Part shown: piece after piece, positions 37,604 to 59,463 of the stretch
How the letters are laid out: each line of letters begins with the position of its first letter
Position numbering within the stretch: the first letter of the stretch is position 1
Sequence record: NC_047995.1
DNA: 64,000 nucleotides
Direction: 5' to 3' (one strand)
Notes under the pieces: model-generated
Seen by the model: the letters and a program-made list of their open reading frames with translations, nothing else
Databases searched by the model: none
Told to the model about the DNA's origin: nothing
Translations under genes and position numbers: made by a program

Positions 37604-39220
37604 ATGTCATTCGATCTTCGTCAAAACTTACTGCTTGTTCGTGACGCTTCCCTGACAGGCAAACCGCTGTTCTACTTCTACACTGCAATGGGCCGCGTCA
37701 TGGTCCTGACTGGTGACGTGCTGCGTGAAATCCTTGAGCGTCAGAAAGAGGGTACACTCTGCACCAACACTTACTGGGGATTCGTATCAGACCCTACGTT
37801 GGAAGTTTGGTCGTTCGATGATAACAATGACCTAATGCTTCACCACCGCATCGGCAAGTCCTGCAAAACGTTTCTGCCTTACGAAATGATTGCGAGTGCG
37901 CATGACGGGTTCAAGCCAATCAATGGCATGTTCATTGAAGACAGCTTGCACCGCATCATCAAGATTCATCTCAAGGCAACTTGTCGTGAAGAACAAAAGA
38001 TTACGTGGTTCGCCGATCTGCCTGAGCCTGAGATGCGTAGCATGTTGTTGTCACTGGGTCTGGGCCCGCTGCGCGTAGAGCGTGAAGACAAAGAGGGTCT
38101 GGTCAAGCTGCATGATCAGTGGCTGGAAGACTTCGATGACAAATACAAATACACGCATAACACACTCGGCCTCGATGAAGACGAAAAGATTCCTGCTGAT
38201 TATCGCCCTGAACGTATTCGTGACATTACGAAACGTATGATGGCTGGCACCAAGACACAAGAGATGATGGACCAGACTCTGAGTGACTTGCTGGGCCAGT
38301 GTCGTATCAGAGGCGATGTGCCTATGCCTAACAGCAAGTTCAATCGCAGTCAGTTGACCTGCTACTACGCAACGCATTTGATCTTTGCGCATGACGCAGA
38401 CGAAAAGCTGCGTAGCTTGATTGATAATCCGCAGTTCCTCGTTAACTTCATCTACGGCTGGTACCCTGATTATACGTGGATTACGATCAACGAAGAAACG
38501 TTCGACTATCAACAGTCACTGGTACGCGCTGCGCTGATCTCCCTCAAGAGCCATGTGCAGAATGAAATCGGTACGTACAAACTTGTACACGGCATGGTTA
38601 CGTTCACTGAGGACTTTGATCCACACGCGAAAGACAGGCCAGAAGAAGTAGAGGACGAGGAAGAGTACGACGAGGAAGAAGATGACGACGCAGAGCAGGA
38701 CGTTATCGACTACCTGCGCACTCGTAGTGAAGACGAACTACGCGCCGTTGCAATCAAGAGAAAAATGATTACCTCGCGTAAAGCAAAAACGCTGGACAAG
38801 GAAGAGCTTGTCGAAGTGTGCGCTGACTACTACGGCTCGGAGCTGCCTGAAGACTTCGACGAAGCAGAAGAAAAGGAACAGGAGCGCGTTCCTACGCCTC
38901 GTAAATTCCCTGCGCTGTCTAACGCGTCCAGTATTAAATACGATATCATCCGCAGCATTCTGAGCACTGCGCGTCGGTATAAGACGCAACCTGTACGCAT
39001 TAAGAAGACTGATCGTAATGCCCGCAAAGAGGCAGAAGTCAACGAGCGTAAGAGAGTGATCGACACTCTCCGCGATGCTGTCAACGATAACTGGTTGGAG
39101 TCTCTGCCTGCAAATACGTTAACGGCGCTTGCGTACTCTCTTACTAAGATGAAAGACAATGATCGCTACCCACGTGACTGTGCTTTCCTGAAAGAACTAA
39201 TTAAACACGCGGTCAAGTGA
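37604..39220 (+). CDS. Multidomain protein with two HeH-like modules and an acidic tract
   Basis: Modules at 38009-38122 and 38714-38830; EEVEDEEEYDEEEDDD tract. Confidence 0.8.
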   Translation: MSFDLRQNLLLVRDASLTGKPLFYFYTAMGRVMVLTGDVLREILERQKEGTLCTNTYWGFVSDPTLEVWSFDDNNDLMLHHRIGKSCKTFLPYEMIASAHDGFKPINGMFIEDSLHRIIKIHLKATCREEQKITWFADLPEPEMRSMLLSLGLGPLRVEREDKEGLVKLHDQWLEDFDDKYKYTHNTLGLDEDEKIPADYRPERIRDITKRMMAGTKTQEMMDQTLSDLLGQCRIRGDVPMPNSKFNRSQLTCYYATHLIFAHDADEKLRSLIDNPQFLVNFIYGWYPDYTWITINEETFDYQQSLVRAALISLKSHVQNEIGTYKLVHGMVTFTEDFDPHAKDRPEEVEDEEEYDEEEDDDAEQDVIDYLRTRSEDELRAVAIKRKMITSRKAKTLDKEELVEVCADYYGSELPEDFDEAEEKEQERVPTPRKFPALSNASSIKYDIIRSILSTARRYKTQPVRIKKTDRNARKEAEVNERKRVIDTLRDAVNDNWLESLPANTLTALAYSLTKMKDNDRYPRDCAFLKELIKHAVK

Positions 39221-43073: not shown

Positions 43074-44651
43074 ATGGCACGTATCGAAACTAACACTAAC
43101 CTGGTTGGCAAAACTATCGTCCTGCTGAACGGCACCAAAGCTAAAATCGAAGATGCGATTGCATCAGGTTATAAAGTGAAAGGCCAGAGCAAGCGTATCG
43201 CCACTCGTTGTGTTGTGAAAGAAGGCGCTCACTTCCGCGAAATCGAACGCATGAACATGAGCCTGCTGGAAGACACTGGCGAAGGCTATGTAAAGTTGAA
43301 AGACGCGAAAGCTGCGAAAGCAAAACCGGCCGCCGATAAGAAACCAGCAGGCAAGAAAGACCCGAAAGCTACTGGCAAGAAACCTGCCAAGCCTGCGAAA
43401 GAAAAAGAACCTAAGGTTCGTCGCAAAACCTCCGAAGAGAAATCCGACGAGTATCAAGATCTGGCACACGCTATCATCAAAGGTGGCAAGCGCGCCAAGC
43501 CAGTAGAAATCGCTGAGATCGACGCTGACCTGACTGACACCGTAGCGCAACGTCTGGTAGACGTGCTGAACAACTCTGAGATCGCCAAGCTGTGCGCTGA
43601 CAACAAAACGCCGATTGCGAACGCTCTGGAAGTTGCATACGGCGCCGAGTTCGCTCCTGAAACAAACGTCATGCAGATCACGCTGAGCCTGCAATACGCG
43701 AAGCCTGTTGCCGTGCTGTCTCGTCCGACTCTGGAAAACGCCGAAGCCATTGCGTTACGTGCTCAAAAAATGGCGGCGCCTAAGCTGTCCATGAAGCTCA
43801 AGAAAGCGATTCGTGAAGCGTTCAACCTCGAAGACGCCAACGAGCTGGAGCTGGGCACCGTGCTTATCTCTGGCGACGAAGAATTTGTGTTCTTCGGTGA
43901 GTCTGCCAAGCACGTCGGCAAAGCGCTGCTGTATGTCGTAGCGACCGACAAATTCAAATCTGTGCTGGGCTCAACTCTGGGTGATTATGAAATCCCAGAA
44001 CTTGAGGAAGAAGAAGAAGACGCCGCCGAAGAGGAAGAAGAAGAAGAGGAAGAAGACGGCGAAGAAGAGGACGGTGAAGAAGAGGACGGCGAAGAAGAAG
44101 ATACCGCCGAATACGAATACGTTGCCGTGAACAAAGACCAGCTCGATATGGTCAATAAGAAAGTGACCGCTAAGTATCACGCTGCGTTGGCTGAACGCTT
44201 CAATACAACCGAAGAAGTTCTGATCCCGGGTCTGGTGCTGACCGATGGTGAAACGACCTTCGCTTACCTGGGCTGTGATAGCAAAGGCGGTCTGCTGGTC
44301 ATCGACTGCGGTGACGACGGCGAAGGCGAAGACGTGATGCTGTATAGCAAAGCTGATATCAAAGAGCTGGAAGACTTCAATCCTGTGCTGGGCGCTGCTG
44401 GTTCTGATGCCGATGAAGAAGACGGCGACGACGATGCGGAAGAAGACGGCGACGATGAAGAAGATGGCGATGACGAAGACGAAGACGGTGAAGATGACGA
44501 CTTCGACTTTGACGATGTACCAGAAACTGATATCGAAGATCTGACCGACGACGAACTGCGTGACCGTGTAGTTGAAGCAGGCCTGACCACTGTACGCAAA
44601 GCCGATCAGATGGACGCCGCTAAACTGCGCAAGCTGCTGAAAAGCGCATAA
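43074..44651 (+). CDS. Large modular acidic protein (basic N-domain, two repeated domains, D/E tracts, C-terminal HeH-like module)
   Basis: GAGGAG SD; strong codon bias; module at 44532-44648; paralogous domains shared with 44734. Confidence 0.9.
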   Translation: MARIETNTNLVGKTIVLLNGTKAKIEDAIASGYKVKGQSKRIATRCVVKEGAHFREIERMNMSLLEDTGEGYVKLKDAKAAKAKPAADKKPAGKKDPKATGKKPAKPAKEKEPKVRRKTSEEKSDEYQDLAHAIIKGGKRAKPVEIAEIDADLTDTVAQRLVDVLNNSEIAKLCADNKTPIANALEVAYGAEFAPETNVMQITLSLQYAKPVAVLSRPTLENAEAIALRAQKMAAPKLSMKLKKAIREAFNLEDANELELGTVLISGDEEFVFFGESAKHVGKALLYVVATDKFKSVLGSTLGDYEIPELEEEEEDAAEEEEEEEEEDGEEEDGEEEDGEEEDTAEYEYVAVNKDQLDMVNKKVTAKYHAALAERFNTTEEVLIPGLVLTDGETTFAYLGCDSKGGLLVIDCGDDGEGEDVMLYSKADIKELEDFNPVLGAAGSDADEEDGDDDAEEDGDDEEDGDDEDEDGEDDDFDFDDVPETDIEDLTDDELRDRVVEAGLTTVRKADQMDAAKLRKLLKSA

Positions 44652-46828: not shown

Positions 46829-48098
46829 TCACGTATTCAACCACGACGAGAAGCAATTGCTCCTGTCAGTGGCTGAGTCTAAATATCTGGTGCGTCTTGA
46901 TTGCCCCGACTATTTGAAGAAGTCAAAACACTCGATTGAAATTCGTCACACGGTAACCAATCGCGGCGAGCAACGTCGAAGCGGTGTTGTGAATACAACG
47001 TTCGTTCCGCGTATTCATACCTCAACTGTGCAGCGTCTGGTTCGTGAAATCCGCGACTCGGCGGGTGTAGCTGCTTCCACAAGTTTGGCCGCGTTGTTTG
47101 AACTCGGGCTCGGTGTGCCGAAGCAACGTGATATTGCAACGTACCTGCGTGACTACTCGCGTGAGAACGATAAGAAGGGTGTGGGCATCAAGTATATCCG
47201 CAAACTGATTAACGAGTATCATCGCAAGCACCGTCACAGTTTCGCTGGTAGTCGCTGGCTGATGCCTGCTGTCTACACGGCGAACATGCTGAACATGCAG
47301 TCCTTCATTCATCTGAAAGAAGACGGCTACAGCAAGAAGGTCAAAGTGCCTGACGGTCTGCCTGTCGTTCTGATCTACCAGAACACCAACCATGCGAAAG
47401 CAGAGTTCACCTTGTGTGACGCATTCATGATAAGCCCGCTAGGTTATCCGATGCCGTTCGCGCAGATTGCATTACGTCCTGAGTTCAAAGGCGCGCCGAA
47501 AGTATTCCATTCGAAAGCGCTGCGTGGTCAGGGTATGTATAGCATGGTGATGGGCATCATGCACTGGGAGAAAGGCGATGCGCTCTCTCACTTCCGTGAG
47601 TTGACTGCGATTGACGACGACCCGTACCTGACGTTGTTGAGTAACCCGCAGTATGCTGATCGTCGTTCGCCTGAATATCAAGCGTTGCTGGACAAACGTG
47701 CTGAGTATGCGGAACAGCGTCAGGAGCATAACGAAGTGATTGCTAAGTATGGCAACACTACGCGGGCCCTCAAGCCTTCTCAAGTGGAGCGCTTGGAGAA
47801 AGCTGAGGAGTTCTTCAAAGAACGCAAATCGTTTATGGACGACTTTGATAAGTTCGAGAAGAAAGAGAACCACCACGCGGCTAAGAAGTTCTCTGTAGCC
47901 AGTGCGCAGTTCGCGGCCGTTGATTGTGGAACCATCGCTGACCGTTCAACGTATATGTCTGTTGCGTCCGGCCTCGACAAGGTAAACAAGATTCTCACTA
48001 AGTGGGGATTTACCACAGTCGATACTGTTAATAGTAGTTTGAAGAAGTCTATCCTTACATTCGACCCAACAAACGCAACACGCGTATGGTCACTGTAA
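46818..48098 (+). CDS. Hypothetical basic protein with coiled-coil segment
   Basis: GAGGG SD; 426 aa. Confidence 0.8.
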   Translation: MFYDHVFNHDEKQLLLSVAESKYLVRLDCPDYLKKSKHSIEIRHTVTNRGEQRRSGVVNTTFVPRIHTSTVQRLVREIRDSAGVAASTSLAALFELGLGVPKQRDIATYLRDYSRENDKKGVGIKYIRKLINEYHRKHRHSFAGSRWLMPAVYTANMLNMQSFIHLKEDGYSKKVKVPDGLPVVLIYQNTNHAKAEFTLCDAFMISPLGYPMPFAQIALRPEFKGAPKVFHSKALRGQGMYSMVMGIMHWEKGDALSHFRELTAIDDDPYLTLLSNPQYADRRSPEYQALLDKRAEYAEQRQEHNEVIAKYGNTTRALKPSQVERLEKAEEFFKERKSFMDDFDKFEKKENHHAAKKFSVASAQFAAVDCGTIADRSTYMSVASGLDKVNKILTKWGFTTVDTVNSSLKKSILTFDPTNATRVWSL

Positions 48099-48124
48099 AC
48101 ACCGTATCTGAGGAGATAACGCAA

Positions 48125-51082
48125 ATGTCTAACAACAATAATCTGGGCGCTGCCGCAACATTCGGTGCTGAAACGCAGAAGATGTTGACCGATCAGCAAC
48201 GTCGTTCGCAGTCTGCCGAAAGCGGCCACGTAAACAAATGCACCATCGTTGTGCTGACCTCGCTGAACGCACACAATCGTTTCTCGTATCTGTCCGCTGA
48301 CGAGCAATTGATTGAACGTCCGATCGAAGGCAAAGTGATGGACCGTTTGCCGAAGCTGATTGAACGCGCCTCTGGTGCTTCCACTGATCCGAACAGCGCG
48401 TATCACATTCTGCATCCAAACAACGGCGTGCCTACTCGTATCGACGAGCGCATCAAAGTAGGCGAAGGTGATTCGGTCATCGTTTCATATACTGTAAACA
48501 AAGCAGTGTCAGAGATGTATGGCAGTTTATCGCTCGCTCTGTTTAGTGCTGGTGATGGTGATCTCGCTGACCTGGCGGCTGAGTTTGGTATTCACTCCAT
48601 CTCAATCGTTGAAGAAGCGAAAGCTCCTGATTACATCAAAGCCCTCACCGATCAGGTGGAAGCTCTGAATATTGTAAATCTCACTAGCATTGATGAAGCT
48701 GACGGCGCATTCGAAAAACCTGTCATCGACTACAGCGCTCTGCCTGGCAATCCAACTAACGTGTTGTCTGGCGCTGTTCGTACTTTCATTATGCAAACTA
48801 TCAGCGGCGAAGTCTTCGCTGCAATTCCAAATAACGGAGAACTGAACGTGAAACCAACTAACACCCCGACCCCTGTTACTCTGGACGAAGACTTCGACGC
48901 CGAAGACGAAGTGCTTGATCAGAACGGCGGCGAAGGCGAAGACGACGAAGAAGCGACAGGCACCGACCTGTTCGGCTATAAAGCCGAAGCGCTCACCGTC
49001 GAGCAAATGACAGAAGCGCTCGAAGCTCTGTCCTACGATGTTAGCGCGATGGACGAAGACGGCATCCGCGAATCGTTTGAAACTGAACAGCAGATCTGGC
49101 TGGCCAACAACGACAACGCCGAAGATGGCGAAGAAGAGGACGAAGAAGAAGACGGCGAGTTCGACGCTGCTCTGTATCTTGGCCACCTGCTGGCTGCCGA
49201 CGAACTTGATCGTACGGCTCTGAAAGTTCTGGTGCGTACTCAAGACCTCAAAGTGATGAAGTCTGATACCGAAGAAACGCTGACTGCGAAACTGCTGGAA
49301 CTGGTTGAAGGTGCGACCGAGCAGGAAATGGCTGAACTGATCAACACCTTCGTAGGCGCGCTGCAAGAGCGTGAGATCGATTGTCCTAACCTGCTGGCTG
49401 CTCTGTCGTCTGATGGAGACGAAGAAGAACAGGACGACGAAGAAGAAGAAGAAGATGAAGACGATTCTGAGGAAGAAGAATCCGAAGATGAAGACGAATC
49501 TGATGCCGACGAAACGCAAGCGCAGATCGACGCCGTTACCGATCCTCTGGACTACTTCCAGTTCGCTGGTGGTTCTCTGACTGCTGAACAACGTGCTGCT
49601 GCCGTTGAAGCGATGGGCGAAGATGTTACTGGCCTGAACATCGTGCAGGTAATGAAAGCGTTCTCTCGCATTCAGAGCCAGACCTCTGAGTTCGATGCCG
49701 AAGCGCAGGACGAAGCTGAGTCCGAAGGCAATACCGAAGAGCTGGTCGCGCTGCTGTCTCAGTACGATGACGCTACCGTGCAGCACATCGCAGAAAGCCT
49801 GGGCGTTAACGTTGACGAATGCGAAACCGCAGACGAAATGATCGACGCGATTGTTAACGGCGGCACCGAAGATCAGTTCGCTGCTGTTGAAGAAATCGCA
49901 ACCAACTACGGTGTTGACCTGTCCGAAGTTGCTGACGGTGATGATCTGGACTTCGTTGATGCGCTGCTGGCTGTACTGCCTGCGTTCCTGAACGACGACG
50001 AAGTTGCCGAGCAGGACGAAGACGAAGAAGACGCGGAAGAAGCTGACGAAGCCGAAGCTGACGTTGCTACTGAAAACGATAGCCTGCGTTTCGTTAAAAA
50101 CGTTGACACCAAAAACTCTGTCGGCCCGATGCTGTCTGTCGAAATGGATCAGGCACTGGTAATCAACTTCACTCTGACTGACGGCGATACCTACCGCGAC
50201 GTTGAATCTGAGCTGGCTGATGTTAACGGCTTTAACTACCGCTTCCCGTTCAATCTGGGCCGCGCGGACAAAGCACCTGGTGCTATGCTCCTGCCAGTGC
50301 AGTCTCTGATGGAAATCGTTGAGCGCGTGAACACCACTCGCTTCCTCGCAGATCCTAAAACGTTCAACGTGGCCGCGTGGGCAGAAAGCCTTGAAGCTAC
50401 TCTGAGCGAAGAAATCGCAAGCGCTCTGTATGCAGGTCGTATCGAAGACGGTCTGGACCCGAGCGAAGCAGGTATCGTTGTTGGTGACTTCATCGACGAC
50501 GAAGAACTGGAAGAAGCGCAAGCGCTGGGCCACATCGACCCTGAGCAATTCGCTGAACTGTCTGGTGATCATCTGCCGATTGCAAGCCTGTACAACGCTC
50601 GCTCTCGCGTTCGTCCTGTGCAAGTTGATACCGCACACGTTGCGCTGCACACCACCGTAATGAACATCGCTGTCCCAGGCTTCTGGGGTGATGCACCTGT
50701 TCAGCGTATGGTGCAGGCCGCAGTCAACCGCGTTATCGCTCTGTCTGAAACTGTCGAAGGCGTTAAGGTATACGCTGCGTTCACGATGGAATCTGCGGCA
50801 TTGCTGAACAATGATCGTCTGTTCGAAGCACTGTCCACTCTGCGTGAAATCGAAGGCGCCCAGTCCTACTCTGCTGTAGACGCTGCGAACTTCGATGAAG
50901 CCGAAGACGTGATTGAAGTTGCAAGCGCTCTCGATACGCGTGACCTGCCGCTGTCTATCCTGTCTGGTGGTCTGGCTGCCGCAACGTTCGACAACGGTGG
51001 TGACCTGACTGTCCTGGTGCCGTGCTTCTCTACCGAAGAAGAAGATGAATCGGAAGATGAAGACGAAGGCGACGACGAATAA
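48125..51082 (+). CDS. Very large, highly acidic protein with about four Rho-N/HeH-like modules between D/E linkers
   Basis: GAGGAG SD before ATG 48125; modules such as LTVEQMTEALEAL..MDEDGIRE and YDDATVQHIAESLGV..ETADEMIDAI. Confidence 0.9.
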   Translation: MSNNNNLGAAATFGAETQKMLTDQQRRSQSAESGHVNKCTIVVLTSLNAHNRFSYLSADEQLIERPIEGKVMDRLPKLIERASGASTDPNSAYHILHPNNGVPTRIDERIKVGEGDSVIVSYTVNKAVSEMYGSLSLALFSAGDGDLADLAAEFGIHSISIVEEAKAPDYIKALTDQVEALNIVNLTSIDEADGAFEKPVIDYSALPGNPTNVLSGAVRTFIMQTISGEVFAAIPNNGELNVKPTNTPTPVTLDEDFDAEDEVLDQNGGEGEDDEEATGTDLFGYKAEALTVEQMTEALEALSYDVSAMDEDGIRESFETEQQIWLANNDNAEDGEEEDEEEDGEFDAALYLGHLLAADELDRTALKVLVRTQDLKVMKSDTEETLTAKLLELVEGATEQEMAELINTFVGALQEREIDCPNLLAALSSDGDEEEQDDEEEEEDEDDSEEEESEDEDESDADETQAQIDAVTDPLDYFQFAGGSLTAEQRAAAVEAMGEDVTGLNIVQVMKAFSRIQSQTSEFDAEAQDEAESEGNTEELVALLSQYDDATVQHIAESLGVNVDECETADEMIDAIVNGGTEDQFAAVEEIATNYGVDLSEVADGDDLDFVDALLAVLPAFLNDDEVAEQDEDEEDAEEADEAEADVATENDSLRFVKNVDTKNSVGPMLSVEMDQALVINFTLTDGDTYRDVESELADVNGFNYRFPFNLGRADKAPGAMLLPVQSLMEIVERVNTTRFLADPKTFNVAAWAESLEATLSEEIASALYAGRIEDGLDPSEAGIVVGDFIDDEELEEAQALGHIDPEQFAELSGDHLPIASLYNARSRVRPVQVDTAHVALHTTVMNIAVPGFWGDAPVQRMVQAAVNRVIALSETVEGVKVYAAFTMESAALLNNDRLFEALSTLREIEGAQSYSAVDAANFDEAEDVIEVASALDTRDLPLSILSGGLAAATFDNGGDLTVLVPCFSTEEEDESEDEDEGDDE

Positions 51083-51984: not shown

Positions 51985-52006
51985 TCGAAACTGTAAACAC
52001 TAATTG
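51985..52006 (+). promoter_or_regulatory. Class B motif (tcgaaa[t]CTGTAAACa[c/t]taa), candidate late promoter
   Basis: Three near-identical copies at about 51985, 52627 and 52684, all intergenic upstream of strongly biased genes. Confidence 0.55.
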
Positions 52007-52057
52007 AAGTTCGAACCGAGCAACAAGCTCACACTTATAAAATCCCGGAGCATTACA

Positions 52058-52600
52058 ATGGCCAAAGCATCAAAGACTTCCCTGGTTCCTACCCTGGTTT
52101 CTCGCATCGCTAAGAAATCTGGTTCTATCGGTACTTCCAAAGTTAAGCCATCTGAACTGCCGCACGATATCCTGATCGAAACGGTACAGGCTGTTGAGCT
52201 GATTGGTTTTATCACCGACCGCACTGAAAACAGCGTTACCATTCGTCACAAACGTGGTCACGGTTCTTCTGCGCAAGTTGTTTCTACCTTCGGTCCGAAC
52301 CAAATCCTGTCTGTGCTGGGTGAAGCTGGTGGTCACGGTAGCGTAACCGCTCTGATCAACGCGCCGGTCCGTGAGTACAAAGGCTTCAACGTTAAATACA
52401 AAGGCGCGACCATCGTTGCTACCTCTGTTGAGACTGGCGAAGTAGTTGAAGTGAACACCGCACTGCCTGGCTTTACCGTTCGCGCGACCGTGAACGAAAC
52501 TGCTGCTGCTAAAAAGTACGGCACGCCTGCTCCAACCAAAGCTAAAAAGCTGGACAAAGGCGACAAAGCTGGTAAAGTGGTCAAGAAAGTAAAAAAGTAA
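52058..52600 (+). CDS. Beta-rich protein with Lys-rich termini (possible Sm/SH3-like barrel)
   Basis: GGAG SD before ATG 52058; very strong codon bias. Confidence 0.8.
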   Translation: MAKASKTSLVPTLVSRIAKKSGSIGTSKVKPSELPHDILIETVQAVELIGFITDRTENSVTIRHKRGHGSSAQVVSTFGPNQILSVLGEAGGHGSVTALINAPVREYKGFNVKYKGATIVATSVETGEVVEVNTALPGFTVRATVNETAAAKKYGTPAPTKAKKLDKGDKAGKVVKKVKK

Positions 52601-52626
52601 TTAAGTCTGACGAAGACTTTTAACTT

Positions 52627-52707
52627 TCGAAATCTGTAAACATTAAGTATGCAGCGAGATAAAAATGTTTCGCTGCCTGTCTCTCGAAATCTGTAAACAT
52701 TAATTGA
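52627..52707 (+). repeat. Tandem class B motifs (tcgaaatctgtaaacattaa x2) flanking a hairpin
   Basis: 20-bp direct repeat; gcagcga..tcgctgc hairpin between the copies. Confidence 0.85.
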
Positions 52708-52744
52708 AGCAACATCGCTTCTAATCAAACAGGAAATAAATATC

Positions 52745-53548
52745 ATGGCAAAAGCTAAAGCAACCGCAAATACCGCAGCAATCGTTCTGGCCAAAATGCT
52801 GGGCGTCGTAGTCGAAAACGCCAGCGCCGCTGATATCGCAGCGATTCTGAAAGAAGCCGGTCTGACTGTTGTTGGCGGTAAAGTTGTTAAAGCTGAAAAA
52901 GGCGGTAAAGCTGCTAAAGGCAAAAAGGCCAAAGCACCTACCGTTGCTGAAATCGTCGCTGCTGTTAAGGACGAAGAAGAACTGGACATCTCCGGCGTTG
53001 ACGAAGACACCCTGCGCGAAGCAGTAGTCAAAGCCAAGCTGTCTACTGCCAAGAAGGCTAAAGCGCTGGACGAAGACGACCTGCGCGAACTGCTGGAAGA
53101 AAAACTGGGTGGCGAGTCCGACGAGGACGACGAAGAAGAGGACGAGGACGAGGAAGACGACTCGGACGACGAAGATGAAGACGGCGACGACGAAGACGAA
53201 GACGACGACTCGGATGATGAAGACGAAGACGACGACTCGGATGATGAAGACGAGGACGACGAAGACGACGAAGACGGCGACGATGAAGAAGAAGAGGACG
53301 ATGAAGACGAAGATGAGGACGAAGATGATGAAGATGATCTCGACCTCGACTCTCTCGACAAGAAAGAGCTGTTAGCCCTGGTCCTCGAACACAAGCTGGC
53401 TCCGGCCAAGAAGGCTAAGAAAATGGACGAAGATGAACTGCGCGAACTCTGCGAAGAACACTTCGGCGGTGAAGACGACGAAGACGAAGATGAAGACGAA
53501 GACGACGAAGACTTCGACGATGAAGACGAAGACGAAGACGACGAATAA
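52745..53548 (+). CDS. Extremely acidic protein with two HeH-like modules and long D/E tracts
   Basis: Modules at 52988-53104 and 53345-53461; near-pure D/E tracts between and after them. Confidence 0.9.
   Translation: MAKAKATANTAAIVLAKMLGVVVENASAADIAAILKEAGLTVVGGKVVKAEKGGKAAKGKKAKAPTVAEIVAAVKDEEELDISGVDEDTLREAVVKAKLSTAKKAKALDEDDLRELLEEKLGGESDEDDEEEDEDEEDDSDDEDEDGDDEDEDDDSDDEDEDDDSDDEDEDDEDDEDGDDEEEEDDEDEDEDEDDEDDLDLDSLDKKELLALVLEHKLAPAKKAKKMDEDELRELCEEHFGGEDDEDEDEDEDDEDFDDEDEDEDDE
53201..53254 (+). repeat. 27-nt tandem repeat encoding DDDSDDEDE x2
   Basis: gacgacgactcggatgatgaagacga(a/g) twice. Confidence 0.85.
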
Positions 53549-53766
53549 GTCCTGATCTGACGTAGGCGCGCCCCTCTAGTTCTGACGAATGAGCGAGGGG
53601 CAAATAATCGAAAAAATATCTCGATTATTTTCGTAAAAAGTTTTAAAATTCCTGTTGTTGAATGTTGAACATAATAATGTAAGACAACAGGAACACAAAC
53701 CTGAACAAATTTATCTTTTCATCCAGCGGTGAAAACGCCGCATCAAATATAAAGTAAGGAAATATC

Positions 53767-54285
53767 ATGTCTAAGAAAGCAATCAGCGGCCTGAACAAAG
53801 AAATCCGCGCAATCGAAAAATCTGAAAAAGCTCTGGCCAAAACCGCTGGCGAGATCACTAAGCAAGCTGAAAGCCTGTCCGAGCGTCGTGCTGGTCTGGC
53901 CGCTCAGGTTGAAGCTCTGCAAAACGACGGCGCCGCGCCTGCTGCAAAACCTGCTAAAGCTGCTAAGCCGGCCAAAGCAGAAAAAGTGAAAGCTGAAAAG
54001 CCAGCTAAAAAAGCAAAAGCTGAAAAAGCTGAAAAGCCTGCTAAAGCTAAAAAAGCCAAAGCAGAGAAAGCTGAAAAGCCTGCTAAAGCTGACAAAAAAG
54101 CGAAAGCCGCCAAAGCAGAAAAACCTGCTAAGGCAGAAAAAGCCGGTAAGAAAGCGAAAGCTGACAAATCCGCTAAGCCTGCTAAAGCAGAAAAAGCTGG
54201 CAAAAAAGTGAAAGGCGATAAGCCTGCTAAAGCCGGTAAGAAAAGCAAAAAAGAAGCCGAAGACTTCGACTTCGATATGGAATAA
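53767..54285 (+). CDS. Histone H1-like / AlgP-like basic protein (KPAKA repeats)
   Basis: N-terminal coiled coil, ~100 aa of (AE)KPAKA(K) repeats, acidic tip EDFDFDME; AAGGA SD. Confidence 0.85.
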   Translation: MSKKAISGLNKEIRAIEKSEKALAKTAGEITKQAESLSERRAGLAAQVEALQNDGAAPAAKPAKAAKPAKAEKVKAEKPAKKAKAEKAEKPAKAKKAKAEKAEKPAKADKKAKAAKAEKPAKAEKAGKKAKADKSAKPAKAEKAGKKVKGDKPAKAGKKSKKEAEDFDFDME

Positions 54286-54317
54286 GCAAGCGCCGCGCAC
54301 TAGCGGTACTTGATCTG

Positions 54318-54349
54318 AAAGGGCAGCGCTGACGAGCGTTTGCCCTTTT
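54318..54349 (+). terminator. Rho-independent terminator
   Basis: aaagggca-gcgct..agcgt-tgcccttt followed by tg. Confidence 0.75.
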
Positions 54350-54382
54350 GTCATATCTAGCACAATTTTTGAGGCCATAGCC

Positions 54383-54877
54383 ATGTCAGCCGAACACCTG
54401 TTAAATGACGACCTTCCCGACGATACCCTCCCTCTTAAAGTTCCTACCCCGCAAGAGAAGCCTTCATACTTCGACCTCGTGTCGTTGCGCATTGAAGCCG
54501 CAGCCCGTCTTGCACGTTCCCTTAAAACTCTTAAAGACGCCAACGTATTCGGTGACGACAACACCGTGAACAGCGATCTCATGCTCACTAAAGCGCTGGA
54601 GGTTGCCGAGCAACACTGGGCCAGTATCTGCAACGGCGTAGTGCCTATCAAAGACTCGCATGGCAGAGAGTCAATGCGCGACAATCTTCCTGCGTGTATC
54701 GAAGCGTTTCGCATTATCGTAATGGAACACGCGCAACGCCAGGCACTGGAGCTTGAATGCCGTAACGCTATCGACCACAAAGGTGGCTTCAAGATTCTGA
54801 CGCGTACTCAACTGCTCTACATCGAACCTAAACACGTCTGCGATGGAACATGCGACCATGACTCAAAAACTGTCTGA
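54383..54877 (+). CDS. Hypothetical protein
   Basis: GAGG SD. Confidence 0.75.
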   Translation: MSAEHLLNDDLPDDTLPLKVPTPQEKPSYFDLVSLRIEAAARLARSLKTLKDANVFGDDNTVNSDLMLTKALEVAEQHWASICNGVVPIKDSHGRESMRDNLPACIEAFRIIVMEHAQRQALELECRNAIDHKGGFKILTRTQLLYIEPKHVCDGTCDHDSKTV

Positions 54878-55388
54878 GCAAATCAACCGCTATTTTAATC
54901 TCATGGAGAAAATCCGTGAGCAACTCTTCCGTGTGTTGAATGTGTCCGAGCGCTACCTGTGCATCGTGAGCTTCAACACCCAGCACCAGGCAATGCAGTG
55001 CGACCTTGTTAGTCGTGAGAGCCTGTTGCCTGCCAAGCTGCTCGAAGGCCTGCGCGGCCAAGAGCTTGTAGTGTACGGCACCATTACTGCCCAGATTGAG
55101 AAGTGGGTAGCAGACGGTATGGTCGACGACTTCCCTATTGCACAGGACGCCGACACGTATGCGCAGTACCGTAAGCTGGTGGACCCTGAAACGGAGCCGA
55201 CTGTCACTGACGCCAACTTGGCCGAGCACGTTGCGTCCTTGTGTAAGTCAGACGCTCTGAAATACGTTGACCCACTGAGCAAGTATGAGCTGGCTATCCT
55301 CTGCAAGGCATGGGGACTCGCACAAGACGCCAGCGAGACTGTCATGCTATCTCTCGTCAAGGGCTATATTCTGCGCCGCTATTCTTAA
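54858..55388 (+). CDS. Hypothetical protein with C-terminal SAP/HeH-like segment
   Basis: LSKYELAILCKAWGL...ETVMLSLV. Confidence 0.7.
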   Translation: MTQKLSEQINRYFNLMEKIREQLFRVLNVSERYLCIVSFNTQHQAMQCDLVSRESLLPAKLLEGLRGQELVVYGTITAQIEKWVADGMVDDFPIAQDADTYAQYRKLVDPETEPTVTDANLAEHVASLCKSDALKYVDPLSKYELAILCKAWGLAQDASETVMLSLVKGYILRRYS

Positions 55389-55406
55389 CTCAAACTCTGC
55401 AAATAA

Positions 55407-55451
55407 CTGGACAGAACCAGAGTAGCGTCTAATACTTTCGTATGATATACT
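55407..55451 (+). promoter_or_regulatory. Phage promoter class A
   Basis: CTGGACAGAAC, then TGA-TATACT at +39. Confidence 0.8.
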
Positions 55452-55521
55452 AGCGCAAGACAAGTAGTGTCTGCACATGCTAATATCGAGTAGTAAACGC
55501 TACTCATAGGAGATCACGAAA

Positions 55522-57549
55522 ATGGCCAAAGCGCCGAAAGCTGCCAAAGTTAAAAAGAAAACGGGTGATGGTTCCCAAGAAGGTTTCGTAATTCACGAAG
55601 GCTTATCGGGTATCAGAGAAAACCCAGGCATGTACATGGGACAACGCGGCGAGGACATGGCGTATCGCGCGGTCAAAGAACCTGTGGACAACGACTACGA
55701 TGAATACATCGCTGGCCGTAACAAGTTGATCGAAGTGGTCATTGATTACGACAACGACCTGAACATCGTAGCCGACCAAGCCGGCGGCATCCCTACCGAC
55801 TTCAAGAAGTTGAAAGACGGTACGAAAGAAACGATCATGACCGCAGCGTTTAGCCGTGTTCATGCGGGTGGTAAATTTAACGATCAGGCGTATAAGACTT
55901 CTGCTGGTACGCACGGTGTGGGTGTCGCGGCCCTGAACGCAATCTCCAGTCAGTTGCGCGTGTGGTCGATGTACAAAGGCGGTTGCGTCTATCAGATGTG
56001 GCAGTGCGGTGAAGTCAAGTCAGGCAAAGACCCTAAGAAAGTCAAGACCATCGACAAAGACGTTATGAGCCTGCTGCGTGATAAGAAGCATAGCAAGTAC
56101 GGTACAGTGGTTGCGTGGACGCTTGACCAGACCGTCGTGTCTGCCGACGTTATGCGCGGTAAGAAGCTGCCGAAGAACTACCGACACGCTGCGCCGAACC
56201 CTGCTCAACTGGGCGAGTGGTTGCGTAACATGTCGATGCTCAACCCAGGCCTTGAGATTCGTCTGACGTTGATTAAGAAGGGCAAGCGCAAAGAGTTCAC
56301 GTTCCACAACAAGAAAGACCTGAACTTCGTTGTGAAGACGATGTGCGAAGAACGCGAGCTGGGTACTGTCGGTAAGCCGTTCATCTTCAAGTCTGACAAC
56401 ATCACTGCCGCACTCGTCTGGACTGATCACGCCGACACTGATAACTTCCTGACGTTCGTTAACACAAGCCCTACAGTTGACGGCGGGTGGCACGTTGTTG
56501 GTTTCCGTGACGCGCTGTTCGATGCTATCAAGCCGTACATGAAAGAGTCGAAGGGCAAAGGCAAGAAGAAGCAGAACTTCAAACAGGAAGACTTGCTTAT
56601 CGGCCTGACTGGTATGTTCGATTGGCGTATGCACGGTGCGCAGTACACGTCACAGGTTAAAGACAAGCTGGCCAGCCGCGTAGAGAAAGACGTATACGCA
56701 GAACTGAACAAGGCGTTTGTCGAATACTTCAAGACGAACAAGAAAGTTGCAACGACGATCATCAAACGCGCCGAAGCAATGAACAAGGGCCGTGAAGAAC
56801 TCAGCGCCGTCGTTAAGTCTATGGCTGACACGAAGAAGAAGCTGAAGGGTAACGCACTCCCTGCTGACCTGATCACTGCAAACAAGTGCAAGCCGCATGA
56901 GCGTGAACTGATTGTCGTGGAAGGGGACTCTGCTGGTGGTACTGCACAGGATGCGCGTAACCCTGACTATCAGGAAGTTATGCTCGCTGGTGGTAAGCCG
57001 CTGAACGGACTGAAAGCCTCACTGGCTGATGTACTCAAGCACAAAGAAGTGCAGGGTCTGTTAGTGAGTATGGGCGCTGACCTGAAATCGCTTGACCCGA
57101 AAGCAGACGCGCCGATCCTCAGCACGAAGAACCTGCGTATCGGTAACTTGCTGCTGCTGATGGATGCGGATGCTGACGGCTTCCACATCGCAACGTTGTT
57201 CTTGGGCGTCATCTATCGCTTGCTGCCTGATATGTTCCGTGAAGGTCGTGTGTGGATCGTCGATGCGCCTCTGTATAACGTCGTACACAAAGGCAAGCAC
57301 TACGGTGGTATGACATTCGAAGAAGCCCGTGCAGCCGCACCTTCGTCTGTGAAAGACAAAGAGATTGTACGTGCGAAAGGTTGGGGTGAAGTCGAACCTG
57401 ACGTTCTGGAAGCTATCGCATTCGATCCGAAGACGCGCCGTGTCATTCGCGTCAACCCATTCGAGAGCGTAGAGCAAGAGCGTTTCTTCCGTGGCGTTCT
57501 GGCAGAAGATGCTGTGCACCGTCGTCGCTTACTGGGTCTGGAGAGCTAA
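55522..57549 (+). CDS. Type IIA DNA topoisomerase subunit B (GyrB/ParE-like)
   Basis: IRENPGMYMG, E.VDN..DE, HAGGKF, GTHGVG (GHKL); EGDSAGG and DADADG.HI (TOPRIM). Confidence 0.95.
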   Translation: MAKAPKAAKVKKKTGDGSQEGFVIHEGLSGIRENPGMYMGQRGEDMAYRAVKEPVDNDYDEYIAGRNKLIEVVIDYDNDLNIVADQAGGIPTDFKKLKDGTKETIMTAAFSRVHAGGKFNDQAYKTSAGTHGVGVAALNAISSQLRVWSMYKGGCVYQMWQCGEVKSGKDPKKVKTIDKDVMSLLRDKKHSKYGTVVAWTLDQTVVSADVMRGKKLPKNYRHAAPNPAQLGEWLRNMSMLNPGLEIRLTLIKKGKRKEFTFHNKKDLNFVVKTMCEERELGTVGKPFIFKSDNITAALVWTDHADTDNFLTFVNTSPTVDGGWHVVGFRDALFDAIKPYMKESKGKGKKKQNFKQEDLLIGLTGMFDWRMHGAQYTSQVKDKLASRVEKDVYAELNKAFVEYFKTNKKVATTIIKRAEAMNKGREELSAVVKSMADTKKKLKGNALPADLITANKCKPHERELIVVEGDSAGGTAQDARNPDYQEVMLAGGKPLNGLKASLADVLKHKEVQGLLVSMGADLKSLDPKADAPILSTKNLRIGNLLLLMDADADGFHIATLFLGVIYRLLPDMFREGRVWIVDAPLYNVVHKGKHYGGMTFEEARAAAPSSVKDKEIVRAKGWGEVEPDVLEAIAFDPKTRRVIRVNPFESVEQERFFRGVLAEDAVHRRRLLGLES

Positions 57550-57550
57550 C

Positions 57551-57805
57551 ATGTTCAACATTGCAAATCTGCCTGACGGTACGATGGTGCGTTTCCTCGA
57601 TATGCCTGCTGTGCAATATCCACCACTGACTGACGAGCAACGCGGTCAGTGTGACGCACTCATGGTCAAAGCGCGTGAACTGACGAAGGACGTTAGTGTG
57701 TCTGGGTTCACTATCGTTGACGGCAAGCCTGATGCGCGTGTGCAAATTCAAATGCGCCGCACAACTCTCGATAAGATTAATGCGATTGCCAAAGGAGAAC
57801 AGTAA
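57551..57805 (+). CDS. Small hypothetical protein inserted between the topoisomerase subunits
   Basis: GGAG SD before ATG 57551; stop overlaps the subunit A start. Confidence 0.7.
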   Translation: MFNIANLPDGTMVRFLDMPAVQYPPLTDEQRGQCDALMVKARELTKDVSVSGFTIVDGKPDARVQIQMRRTTLDKINAIAKGEQ

Positions 57806-59463
57806 TGGCAATTACGCCGAAGAAAGTGAACGTTAAAAAGGTTAAGCCGACCGCTGTAGCGAAAACAGCTAAGCCTGTTAAGCTCAAGTCGAAAGCTGTG
57901 TCAGTCGATGACCTGCCGAAGAAGAAAAAGAAAGGCACCAGCGTAGCTACTGAGAATGCGCCTGGAACCTCACTCTATCCTCTGCTGGGTCAAGACCCGA
58001 AGCTGATTAACGATGAAGGTCTGTCGGACTATACTCGTCGTGCGCTGTCGCATTACGGTGCGTATGTTGTTGAAGACCGCGCTATCGCCGACTATCGTGA
58101 CGGCCTCAAGCCTGTGCACCGTGCTCTGCTGTGGTCACTGTCTGACTTGGGCTTACGTCCGACTGCTGCGTTCAAGAAGTCTGCGCGTACTGTGGGTGAC
58201 ACAATCGGTAAGTATCACCCACACGGCGATGCTGCTTGTTATGGTGCGATGGTAACGATTGCGAATACGGTGCCGCCTGCTGTAGCTGGTGCGGGTAACT
58301 GGGGCAACCCTGTGTCTGCCGCTGCTGCTCAACGTTATACCGAAGCGCGTATGTCGAAGTTCACAGGTAGTTTCTTGCTGGACACTGACTATCTCGAAGT
58401 AGTGCCTCGTGTGCCGAACTTCTCGAATGACCTTGAGATTCCTCTGTACCTGCCAGCCCTGCTGCCGTACATGTTGTTCAATAGCTCGGTGCCTGCTCCT
58501 GCGTACGGCGTGAAATGCGGTAACCCACCGTTCAGTTTCAGCTCGGTCAGCAAGGTCGTGTGTGACATGCTCAATGGCGTTCAGTACGATGCGAAGAAAC
58601 TCGCTAAGACGCTCAAGATAGCGCACACGTATGGCTGTGAAGACGTGACCTCTGACGAGGAAATGCTGCAACTGATCTCGACAGGCAAAGGCAAAGTAAC
58701 GTATCAGCCGAAGATTCATGTGGATGAAAAGAACAAGCTGGTCATCGTCCAGACTTATGTTCCTGCTGGTATGTCGAAGCTCGACGCCATCACGAAGAAG
58801 CTGGAGAAGATTGGCGAGTGGAACGGCGTTGTGTCTGCACGTAACGCAAGCGGTAAGAAGAACAAGCACTCTGGTCCGTACGGTGCTGCGTTCGAAATCA
58901 AATGCCGTGGTAGTGAAGACCTGCTGTATGAAATTGCTCAGAAGGTATTGCGTGAAGTAACATCGAGCGTCAACTATACGCTGGGTGTGACCGTTCGCCG
59001 TGCTGATGCCTCGAACAAGTTCATGTACCTCGACTACCTGAAGTATTTCAAAGCGTGGATTGCTTATCGCGTTAAGCTCGAAACAGCGATGCTCCAGAAC
59101 AAGCTGACGAAAGCCGAAAAGGCACTGCACTTGCAGCAAGTTTTCCTCTGGGCAGTGGATAACATGGACAAGCTGCTCAAAGTGTTGCCGAAAGTGTTGG
59201 TCGCTGCTGACCCTGATGCGATGCTTGCAAAGCTGTGTAAGATTCCAGTTGAAGATGCGAAGATCATCCTCGACCGTCAAGTGCGTAAGCTGGCTAAGCT
59301 GGAGCGTAGTGGTCTGATTGCCAAGATCAAAGAAATCAAGGCAGAGATAGCTGGCTACAAAGCTGGGCTGAAAGAACCAGGCAAGTATGCAGCCGAGGGC
59401 ACTGCTGCGAAAGTTAAGACCTACCTGAAATCACCAGACGACAAGATGCCTATCAGTCTGTAA
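57805..59463 (+). CDS. Type IIA DNA topoisomerase subunit A (GyrA/ParC-like, no C-terminal pinwheel)
   Basis: RAIAD.RDGLKPVHR, KSAR.VG..IGKYHPHGD, AAAQRYTEAR (catalytic Tyr); 552 aa with a basic N-terminal extension. Confidence 0.95.
   Translation: MAITPKKVNVKKVKPTAVAKTAKPVKLKSKAVSVDDLPKKKKKGTSVATENAPGTSLYPLLGQDPKLINDEGLSDYTRRALSHYGAYVVEDRAIADYRDGLKPVHRALLWSLSDLGLRPTAAFKKSARTVGDTIGKYHPHGDAACYGAMVTIANTVPPAVAGAGNWGNPVSAAAAQRYTEARMSKFTGSFLLDTDYLEVVPRVPNFSNDLEIPLYLPALLPYMLFNSSVPAPAYGVKCGNPPFSFSSVSKVVCDMLNGVQYDAKKLAKTLKIAHTYGCEDVTSDEEMLQLISTGKGKVTYQPKIHVDEKNKLVIVQTYVPAGMSKLDAITKKLEKIGEWNGVVSARNASGKKNKHSGPYGAAFEIKCRGSEDLLYEIAQKVLREVTSSVNYTLGVTVRRADASNKFMYLDYLKYFKAWIAYRVKLETAMLQNKLTKAEKALHLQQVFLWAVDNMDKLLKVLPKVLVAADPDAMLAKLCKIPVEDAKIILDRQVRKLAKLERSGLIAKIKEIKAEIAGYKAGLKEPGKYAAEGTAAKVKTYLKSPDDKMPISL

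Follow-up and report, generated by a model that had tools for sequence, protein, structure and literature searches.

Control of DNA-binding proteins by polyanions and polycations is well studied in eukaryotic nuclei, and no description of it for bacteria or bacterial viruses was found in the literature searched. In the portions of the sources cited, the oppositely charged disordered proteins H1 and prothymosin-alpha form high-affinity, dynamic complexes (PMC7661507, PMC11592313), and the acidic disordered regions of nucleoplasmin/Npm2 and Nap1 mimic the charge of DNA and shield basic DNA-binding proteins (PMC10987829). Among bacterial proteins, the Lys/Pro/Ala C-terminal domain of HbhA is necessary and sufficient for sequence-independent DNA binding (PMC10665949), and AlgP of Pseudomonas localizes with polyphosphate granules, according to the excerpt cited (PMC9239181). 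Gp44 of Bacillus phage SPO1 combines a small DNA-binding domain with a 67-residue disordered region, 57% aspartate or glutamate (D/E) and without basic residues, that contacts the beta and beta' subunits of RNA polymerase (PMC8208478). Here, three genes of the Erwinia jumbo phage vB_EamM_Alexandra (NC_047995; 266,532 bp, genus Alexandravirus), namely gp332, gp333 and gp335, are characterized by the composition, architecture, predicted disorder and fold, conservation, constant net charge, gene context and promoter class of their products. Eukaryotic chromatin and SPO1 Gp44 already exemplify the underlying principle, but its conserved three-gene phage embodiment is undescribed: the literature search returned no paper on these proteins or on any phage-encoded polyanion/polycation set, and two jumbo-phage reviews make no mention of histone-like or acidic proteins.

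The stretch of DNA analyzed (the window) is 64,000 nucleotides long. Its bases 52000-55500 are 100% identical to the Alexandra record, and window positions equal record positions minus 202,532, so that the window is the final 64 kb of that record. Coordinates below are window positions unless marked otherwise. Both gp333 (52745-53548) and gp335 (53767-54285) lie on the plus strand and are annotated as hypothetical proteins in NC_047995. An earlier note on this DNA had treated them as a two-gene pair; the two are indeed coupled, but the unit is a trio, in which gp333 shares its promoter box with gp332 and not with gp335. The features of the three genes are as follows.

52058-52600, plus strand: gp332, net charge +14, third member of the conserved unit
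52745-53548, plus strand: gp333, 267 residues, net charge -97
52745-52939, plus strand: gp333, weakly predicted N-terminal domain and lysine-rich linker (AlphaFold)
52994-53110, plus strand: gp333, module 1 (residues 84-122)
53114-53344, plus strand: gp333, poly-D/E tract (from composition)
53351-53467, plus strand: gp333, module 2 (residues 203-241)
53471-53545, plus strand: gp333, acidic tail with a single invariant Phe (from orthologue comparison)
53767-54285, plus strand: gp335, 172 residues, net charge +26
53776-53928, plus strand: gp335, predicted coiled coil (from the heptad pattern)
53932-54261, plus strand: gp335, K/A/P/E repeats (from composition)
54253-54282, plus strand: gp335, acidic-aromatic tip, the final ten residues EAEDFDFDME

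Conservation of the trio and of its net charges

Nine phage loci, drawn from at least eight genera or lineages, were read. The polyacid and lysine-rich genes are adjacent in all nine (9/9), and the trio with a gp332-type gene recurs in every one of them. Co-occurrence across jumbo phages, which the earlier note had proposed as a check, holds in the phages read, metagenomic relatives included. Within these nine phages, net charge stays between -84 and -105 for the polyacid protein, between +25 and +31 for the lysine-rich protein and between +11 and +17 for the beta-domain protein, over polyacid lengths of 150 to 273 residues. At the same time, the N-terminal domains of the enterobacterial and Pseudomonas polyacid proteins share an hhalign probability of 2.4% and no BLASTP alignment. 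Net charges that remain constant while the sequence becomes unrecognizable are, as read from the encoded proteins, a clear signature of selection on charge itself, and the strongest sign that charge is the selected property.

The block gp330-gp337, within which the trio lies, is syntenic in Alexandravirus, Sasquatchvirus (Y3), Yoloswagvirus, Snuvirus, Salmondvirus (JA11) and Yersinia phage fHe-Yen9-02, and in the two most divergent metagenomic relatives of gp333 (44-54% identity) a coiled-coil lysine-rich gene follows again. In PaBG and Motura the block is not found at the topoisomerase II locus. Confinement of the polyacid and lysine-rich genes to enterobacterial phages was nonetheless ruled out, as both are present elsewhere in the genomes of Pseudomonas phages PaBG and Lu11. 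There, gp332 homologues were located by Foldseek and tblastn; the next gene encodes a protein of 150-159 residues that is 67% D/E (net -93 and -99) and consists of an N-terminal domain and a tract of approximately 100 residues, without modules. The third gene encodes a coiled-coil lysine-rich protein (net +31 and +25) that ends in an acidic-aromatic tip, and the coiled-coil part of gp335 aligns with PaBG gp124 and Lu11_0162 at an hhalign probability of 81% (E 1.3e-5).

Relatives of gp333 form 11 clusters in a database of 5.8 billion proteins, and an exhaustive HMMER scan of 1.8 billion proteins returned five representatives; all are from the same phage type. The acid tracts and an aromatic residue within the acidic tail are kept in all of them.

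Protein architecture and described counterparts

In gp333, 126 of 267 residues (47%) are D/E. D/E content is at least 90% over residues 124-200 (77 residues), and a further acidic tail spans 243-267, in agreement with the near-pure run of roughly 75-80 residues and second D/E tail that the earlier note had reported. Windows of 30 residues with at least 20 D/E occur in just six open reading frames (ORFs) of the 266-kb genome, of which gp333 is the most extreme (29/30). The D/E frame is the true one, because every orthologue conserves the flanking blocks in the same frame. Long ORFs of poly-Ser and K/T/R type, in alternative frames or on the opposite strand over gp333, were rejected as mirror artefacts of its GAN repeats. 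Two long minus-strand ORFs, at 52333-53409 and 53743-54792 (poly-Ser; F/S/L-rich), were likewise ruled out as genes, as they mirror the GAN and the AAR/GCN repeats of gp333 and gp335.

In an AlphaFold model built from ten family members, the acid tract and tail of gp333 are predicted to be disordered, with a predicted local distance difference test score (pLDDT) of 44-56 for the tract, and the N-terminal domain is only weakly predicted and is followed by a lysine-rich linker. Each module is predicted to form a helix, a short linker and a second helix (residues 87-120 and 206-240, pLDDT 85-89). The two modules are 51% identical and share a conserved basic linker between two acidic helices, the sole hint that they may bind DNA or RNA; one relative of gp333 has three modules, and a more distant one retains two. 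A scan of 16 module copies with HeH/SAP/LEM clan profiles (SAP, LEM, HeH, Rho_N, Ish1) gave one LEM match (E 0.02) and one Ish1 match (E 0.015), both far below the curated cut-offs, at which no module matched Pfam. A module profile search of PDB sequences yielded compositional or coiled-coil noise and nothing relevant. The modules had previously been named HeH; two confidently predicted helix-linker-helix units are present, and their secondary structure is compatible with the unit of approximately 35-40 residues (helix, extended linker, helix) of that clan, membership in which is not established. Because the polyacid proteins of PaBG and Lu11 lack modules, these units are accessory. The whole gp333 model had no Foldseek match in PDB, and a PDB sequence search with the N-terminal part returned compositional or coiled-coil noise only.

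The coiled coil of gp335 is predicted from residues 4-55, in which I, L, M, V or F occupies 10 of 15 a/d heptad positions. Residues 56-165 (110 residues) contain 42 K, 37 A, 9 P and 11 E, with eight KPAK and seven PAKA units. The description of this protein as a coiled coil followed by about 100 residues of KPAKA repeats therefore stands in both parts, although the repeats are less basic than that wording implies: with 14 D/E in all, their net charge density is approximately +0.25 per residue. In Pfam, gp335 gave only a sub-threshold match to a coiled-coil domain of unknown function and no winged-helix Linker_histone domain, and its profile had compositional or coiled-coil matches only in PDB. 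No Pfam, NCBIfam, PADLOC or PDB family was found for either gp333 or gp335.

The third protein, gp332, has a disordered basic N-terminus, a beta-rich domain (residues 33-155) predicted by AlphaFold at a pLDDT of approximately 90, and a lysine-rich tail (residues 158-180). Foldseek found relatives in PaBG and Lu11-type phages (E ~1e-11) and, in PDB, nothing below an E of 0.027, with only a loose resemblance to tandem Agenet/SH3-like barrels. Some gp332 orthologues end in an acidic ...EDF tip, as gp335 does.

Among the described systems, H1 and prothymosin-alpha, as the cited excerpts present them, resemble the trio in pairing a disordered protein of high positive charge with a disordered protein of high negative charge, for which competitive, reversible control of DNA binding is plausible (PMC7661507, PMC11592313). 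The charges are approximately -97 and +26 for gp333 and gp335 compared with -44 and +53 for prothymosin and H1 in the cited abstract, and the phage unit includes a third protein, gp332. The likeness to the H1 tail lies in the long Lys/Ala/Pro-rich tail of gp335, albeit one with 14 acidic residues; no homology to H1 was found, and the coiled coil of gp335 takes the place of the winged-helix globular domain. Prothymosin-alpha is small and wholly disordered, whereas gp333 carries roughly double its charge and has predicted folded modules as well as an N-terminal domain of weak prediction, and the PaBG and Lu11 versions come closer; gp333 has no Pfam or NCBIfam match to the prothymosin-alpha family. 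Neither gp335 nor gp333, which the earlier note had likened to H1 and prothymosin, is a relative of either. In mechanism the trio may still resemble the histone/chaperone idea, from which it would differ in having three members, unequal charges, accessory modules and no such kinship. The acidic histone chaperones have defined oligomeric folded cores, of which gp333 has none, and the structured DNA mimics Ocr and ArdA present a rigid acidic array in contrast to the predicted disorder of the gp333 tract; neither group has a sequence or fold match to gp333.

The closest architectural match to gp335 is mycobacterial HbhA, in which an alpha-helical coiled coil precedes a Lys/Pro/Ala-rich C-terminal domain. 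No sequence relation to HbhA was detected, and the repeats of gp335 are about three times longer and end in an acidic-aromatic tip; a coiled coil with a K/P/A tail is an architectural class and not a homologous family. For gp333, the composition of SPO1 Gp44 is comparable, although gp333 exceeds it in both the length and the purity of its tract (77 residues at least 90% D/E versus 67 residues at 57%) and has, in addition, repeated modules and lysine-rich neighbors; no similarity search linked the two proteins, which are set side by side by description only. AlgP, like gp335, is a bacterial lysine/alanine/proline repeat protein and illustrates that such tails can serve other polyanions; it is not homologous to gp335 and lacks a coiled coil, an acidic tip and a polyacid partner gene. 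In Lu11, a gene for a putative polyphosphate kinase is found five genes upstream of the trio. Given the association of the H1-like AlgP with polyphosphate granules, a further candidate for the polyanion partner is polyphosphate, though this placement may be coincidence.

Expression signals and genomic setting

Motif counts were taken over the public Alexandra record, and promoter classes are assigned from motif position. The sequence CTGTAAA has 54 copies in the genome, 29 of which fall within 20-80 nt ahead of a start codon that itself follows a Shine-Dalgarno sequence. For the 419 permuted motifs that served as controls, 10% of copies are so placed, with a maximum of 13 for any one motif. 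Genes downstream of CTGTAAA include those for single-stranded DNA-binding protein (SSB), clamp loader, NAD-ligase, sigma factor, a ParB-like protein and a methyltransferase, so that CTGTAAA(T/C)A represents the motif class found before replication-type genes, and both gp332 and gp333 carry CTGTAAA. A second class, (G/A)CTAATTT, is located 30-55 nt before structural and lysis genes (18 of 23 copies upstream of a start). The box beside the CTGTAAA motif of gp332 and gp333 resembles CTAATTT, as does the loop of a hairpin in the gp335 leader, and none of the boxes matches the late motif exactly. The elements flanking the three genes are as follows.

51991-52009, plus strand: promoter-like box before gp332, CTGTAAAC (motif copy at 51991-52003) followed by a TAATTGAAG box
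52634-52709, plus strand: gp333 regulatory region, two CTGTAAAC copies (52634-52646 and 52691-52709, the second with its motif at 52691-52703 and with a TAATTGAAG box) flanking a hairpin at 52651-52676
53570-53601 and ~53603-53633, plus strand: two terminator-like hairpins after gp333, read from the sequence (a simple terminator scan did not list them)
53649-53693, plus strand: gp335 leader hairpin, minimum free energy -16.4 kcal/mol, z = -4.3
54321-54349, plus strand: GC-rich hairpin followed by TTTT after gp335, terminator-like, read from the sequence

The element CTGTAAAC-A-(C/T)TAATTGAAG is common to gp332 and gp333 and has no other copy in the genome; it is conserved across genera and in one metagenomic relative. 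The two-copy layout also precedes the polyacid gene of Lu11, where the record annotates it as a "putative middle/late promoter". The gp335 leader hairpin is unique in the genome, has a conserved loop sequence and belongs to no Rfam family. Compared over seven phages, its 18 pairs include five with compensatory changes, and several G-U pairs work on the coding strand only. Possible roles are those of an RNA element, for stability, processing or autoregulation, and of an unusual setting for a promoter; the annotated gp334 (53644-53769, minus strand, 41 codons), which overlaps the hairpin, is probably not a gene. The genes gp332, gp333 and gp335 each have a separate upstream element and hairpins downstream, and so appear to be set up for strong independent expression.

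The trio is sited on a plus-strand arm that carries replication and nucleotide-metabolism genes, outside the structural arm, and the block gp330-gp337 lies directly upstream of the gene for the large subunit of topoisomerase II. Scans of gp330-gp337, gp317 and gp325 against Pfam, PHROGs, NCBIfam and PADLOC returned only PHROGs of unknown function. Three further genes of the window encode acidic tracts.

37604-39220, plus strand: gp317, a single gp333-type module immediately following an acidic tract (module hidden Markov model [HMM] E 9e-10)
43074-44651, plus strand: gp325, C-terminal copy of the gp333 module adjoining an acidic tract (module HMM E 1.5e-5)
48086-51082, plus strand: gp330, 998 residues, several poly-D/E tracts, net charge -182, first gene of the conserved block gp330-gp337, PHROG of unknown function

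The module HMM found no copy in gp330. The single chain of gp325 joins the C-terminal gp333 module to a K/P/A tract, a pair of poly-D/E tracts and a DDFDFDD motif resembling the tip of gp335. Charged low-complexity segments are in fact common across the Alexandra genome. In the SSB, gp245 (record 199585-200859, close to the window but not within it), the final ~90 residues alternate poly-D/E and poly-K blocks, which is unusual for an SSB. Lysine-rich N-terminal extensions are found on both topoisomerase II subunits (window 55522-55570 and 57805-57930), the clamp loader, UvsX and the ParB-like protein (record genes gp045, gp213 and gp246); those of the topoisomerase also occur in PaBG and are shorter in Motura. 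The possibility that lysine tags on enzymes are confined to phages whose gp333 bears HeH-type modules was ruled out, as PaBG has such tags too. Among the structural genes lies that for the K/P/A-rich gp187 (record 158393-159058, beyond the window), which carries a CTAATTT motif of the late type.

A candidate charge-based system and its alternatives

The explanation favored here, tentatively and at somewhat less than even odds, is that gp332, gp333 and gp335 constitute an intracellular polycation/polyanion system acting on DNA during replication. As proposed, the DNA binding, mutual binding, timing and purpose of the three proteins would be as follows. Oligomerization of gp335 through its coiled coil would present two or more lysine-rich tails, which could coat or bridge DNA without sequence preference, as do the K/P/A tails of HbhA, HupB and H1, and gp332 would contribute a folded beta-domain with a lysine tail as a further nonspecific DNA coater or bridger. 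The disordered polyanion gp333, with its approximately -95 charges, would compete with DNA for the gp335 and gp332 tails, and probably also for other lysine-tagged phage proteins or host nucleoid proteins, thereby keeping lysine-rich proteins soluble before they contact DNA and their binding reversible. If gp333 competes via its charge, selection is expected on charge and not on sequence. In enterobacterial phages, the two or three modules with their basic linkers may serve to anchor the polyanion on DNA or on some partner, and the short acidic-aromatic tips (...DFDFDME and the like) could be docking motifs for a shared partner.

In favor of this intracellular system are the architecture and near-constant charges of the three proteins, their adjacency in every relative read, the separate signals of each gene, the position of the trio on the nonstructural arm, the replication-gene type of promoter before gp332 and gp333, the absence of the PaBG counterparts from the listed virion proteins, and the precedents of HbhA and of H1 with prothymosin-alpha. 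Several points weigh against it. The three proteins and their relatives are known from genes alone. Their charges are far from 1:1, one gp333 chain carrying the charge of three to four gp335 chains, so that a 1:1 chaperone pair is not implied, and gp335 is a weaker polycation than H1, owing to its 14 acidic repeat residues. Over the nine phages, the net charge of gp333 does not track that of gp335 (r = 0.19), although each is almost invariant. The regulatory element of gp335 differs from that of gp332 and gp333, and co-expression is accordingly not implied. In the enterobacterial clade the whole gp330-gp337 block is conserved, so adjacency there could be mere synteny. Finally, the list of PaBG virion proteins was derived from Coomassie bands and tryptic MALDI mass analysis, which is poor at detecting a polyacid protein (PMC7412058).

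That list bears on the possibility that the trio comprises virion-internal proteins, with the lysine-rich protein packaged to neutralize DNA and the acidic protein serving as a core or scaffold component. The resemblance of the gp332/gp333 box and the gp335 hairpin loop to the late-type CTAATTT would allow late expression, and the K/P/A-rich gp187, which bears a true late-type motif among structural genes, shows a protein of this kind in such a setting; gp187 is, for that matter, a better candidate than gp335 for a packaged basic protein. Since the trio sits in the nonstructural arm beside topoisomerase, none of its boxes is exactly the late motif, and PaBG gene products 124-126 are not among the 14 virion proteins identified from the published bands (PMC7412058, Table 1), a virion role is considered very unlikely. 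Somewhat less remote, yet still unlikely, is that gp333 acts independently of gp335 as a host-directed flexible DNA mimic or decoy for RNA polymerase, nucleoid proteins or defense nucleases, perhaps anchored on DNA by its modules. SPO1 Gp44 provides a precedent, as its folded part and D/E-rich disordered segment follow the same logic as the gp333 modules and 77-residue tract, and the family evolves fast and is limited to one clade, a pattern frequent among counter-host factors. A decoy would leave unexplained the constant presence of lysine-rich coiled-coil and lysine-tailed neighbors and their conserved charges; moreover, gp333 has no PADLOC match or other link to defense, and its promoter belongs with those of replication genes, not with those of immediate-early host-takeover genes, a timing that is itself deduced from the motif.

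Another reading, to which little probability is assigned, extends beyond the trio, in that gp332, gp333, gp335 and other block-charged proteins would build a membrane-less replication compartment by complex coacervation. It is equally doubtful that the polyacid scaffolds gp333, gp330 and gp325 and the polycations gp335 and gp332 condense with DNA, the lysine tags on replication enzymes being client signals. The charged segments spread through the genome, including the block tail of SSB and the lysine-rich ends on the topoisomerase II subunits, clamp loader, UvsX and ParB-like protein, are consistent with such a compartment, as is gp325, which holds all of the elements in one chain; furthermore, phase separation organizes transcription in phage SPO1 (Gp27; PMC13401047). 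These arguments are drawn purely from composition, and lysine-rich ends on DNA enzymes may simply raise affinity for DNA. In its most general form, for which the chances are rated just as low, jumbo phages of the Lupandier group (Alexandra, Y3, Yoloswag, the Dickeya phages, PaBG and Lu11) would organize replication by charge-coded condensation, in which a dedicated polyanion with a fixed charge near -95, polycations in oligomeric form, the block-polyampholyte tail of SSB and the lysine tags of replisome enzymes would form and populate a membrane-less DNA compartment. If true, this would represent an electrostatic alternative, made of protein only, to the proteinaceous nucleus found in chimalliviruses.

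Should the proposed polycation/polyanion system prove correct, the trio would provide a model of DNA handling, histone-chaperone-like or coacervate-based, that is both minimal and genetically compact, and it would explain a block of "hypothetical" genes common to dozens of phages of plant and animal pathogens.

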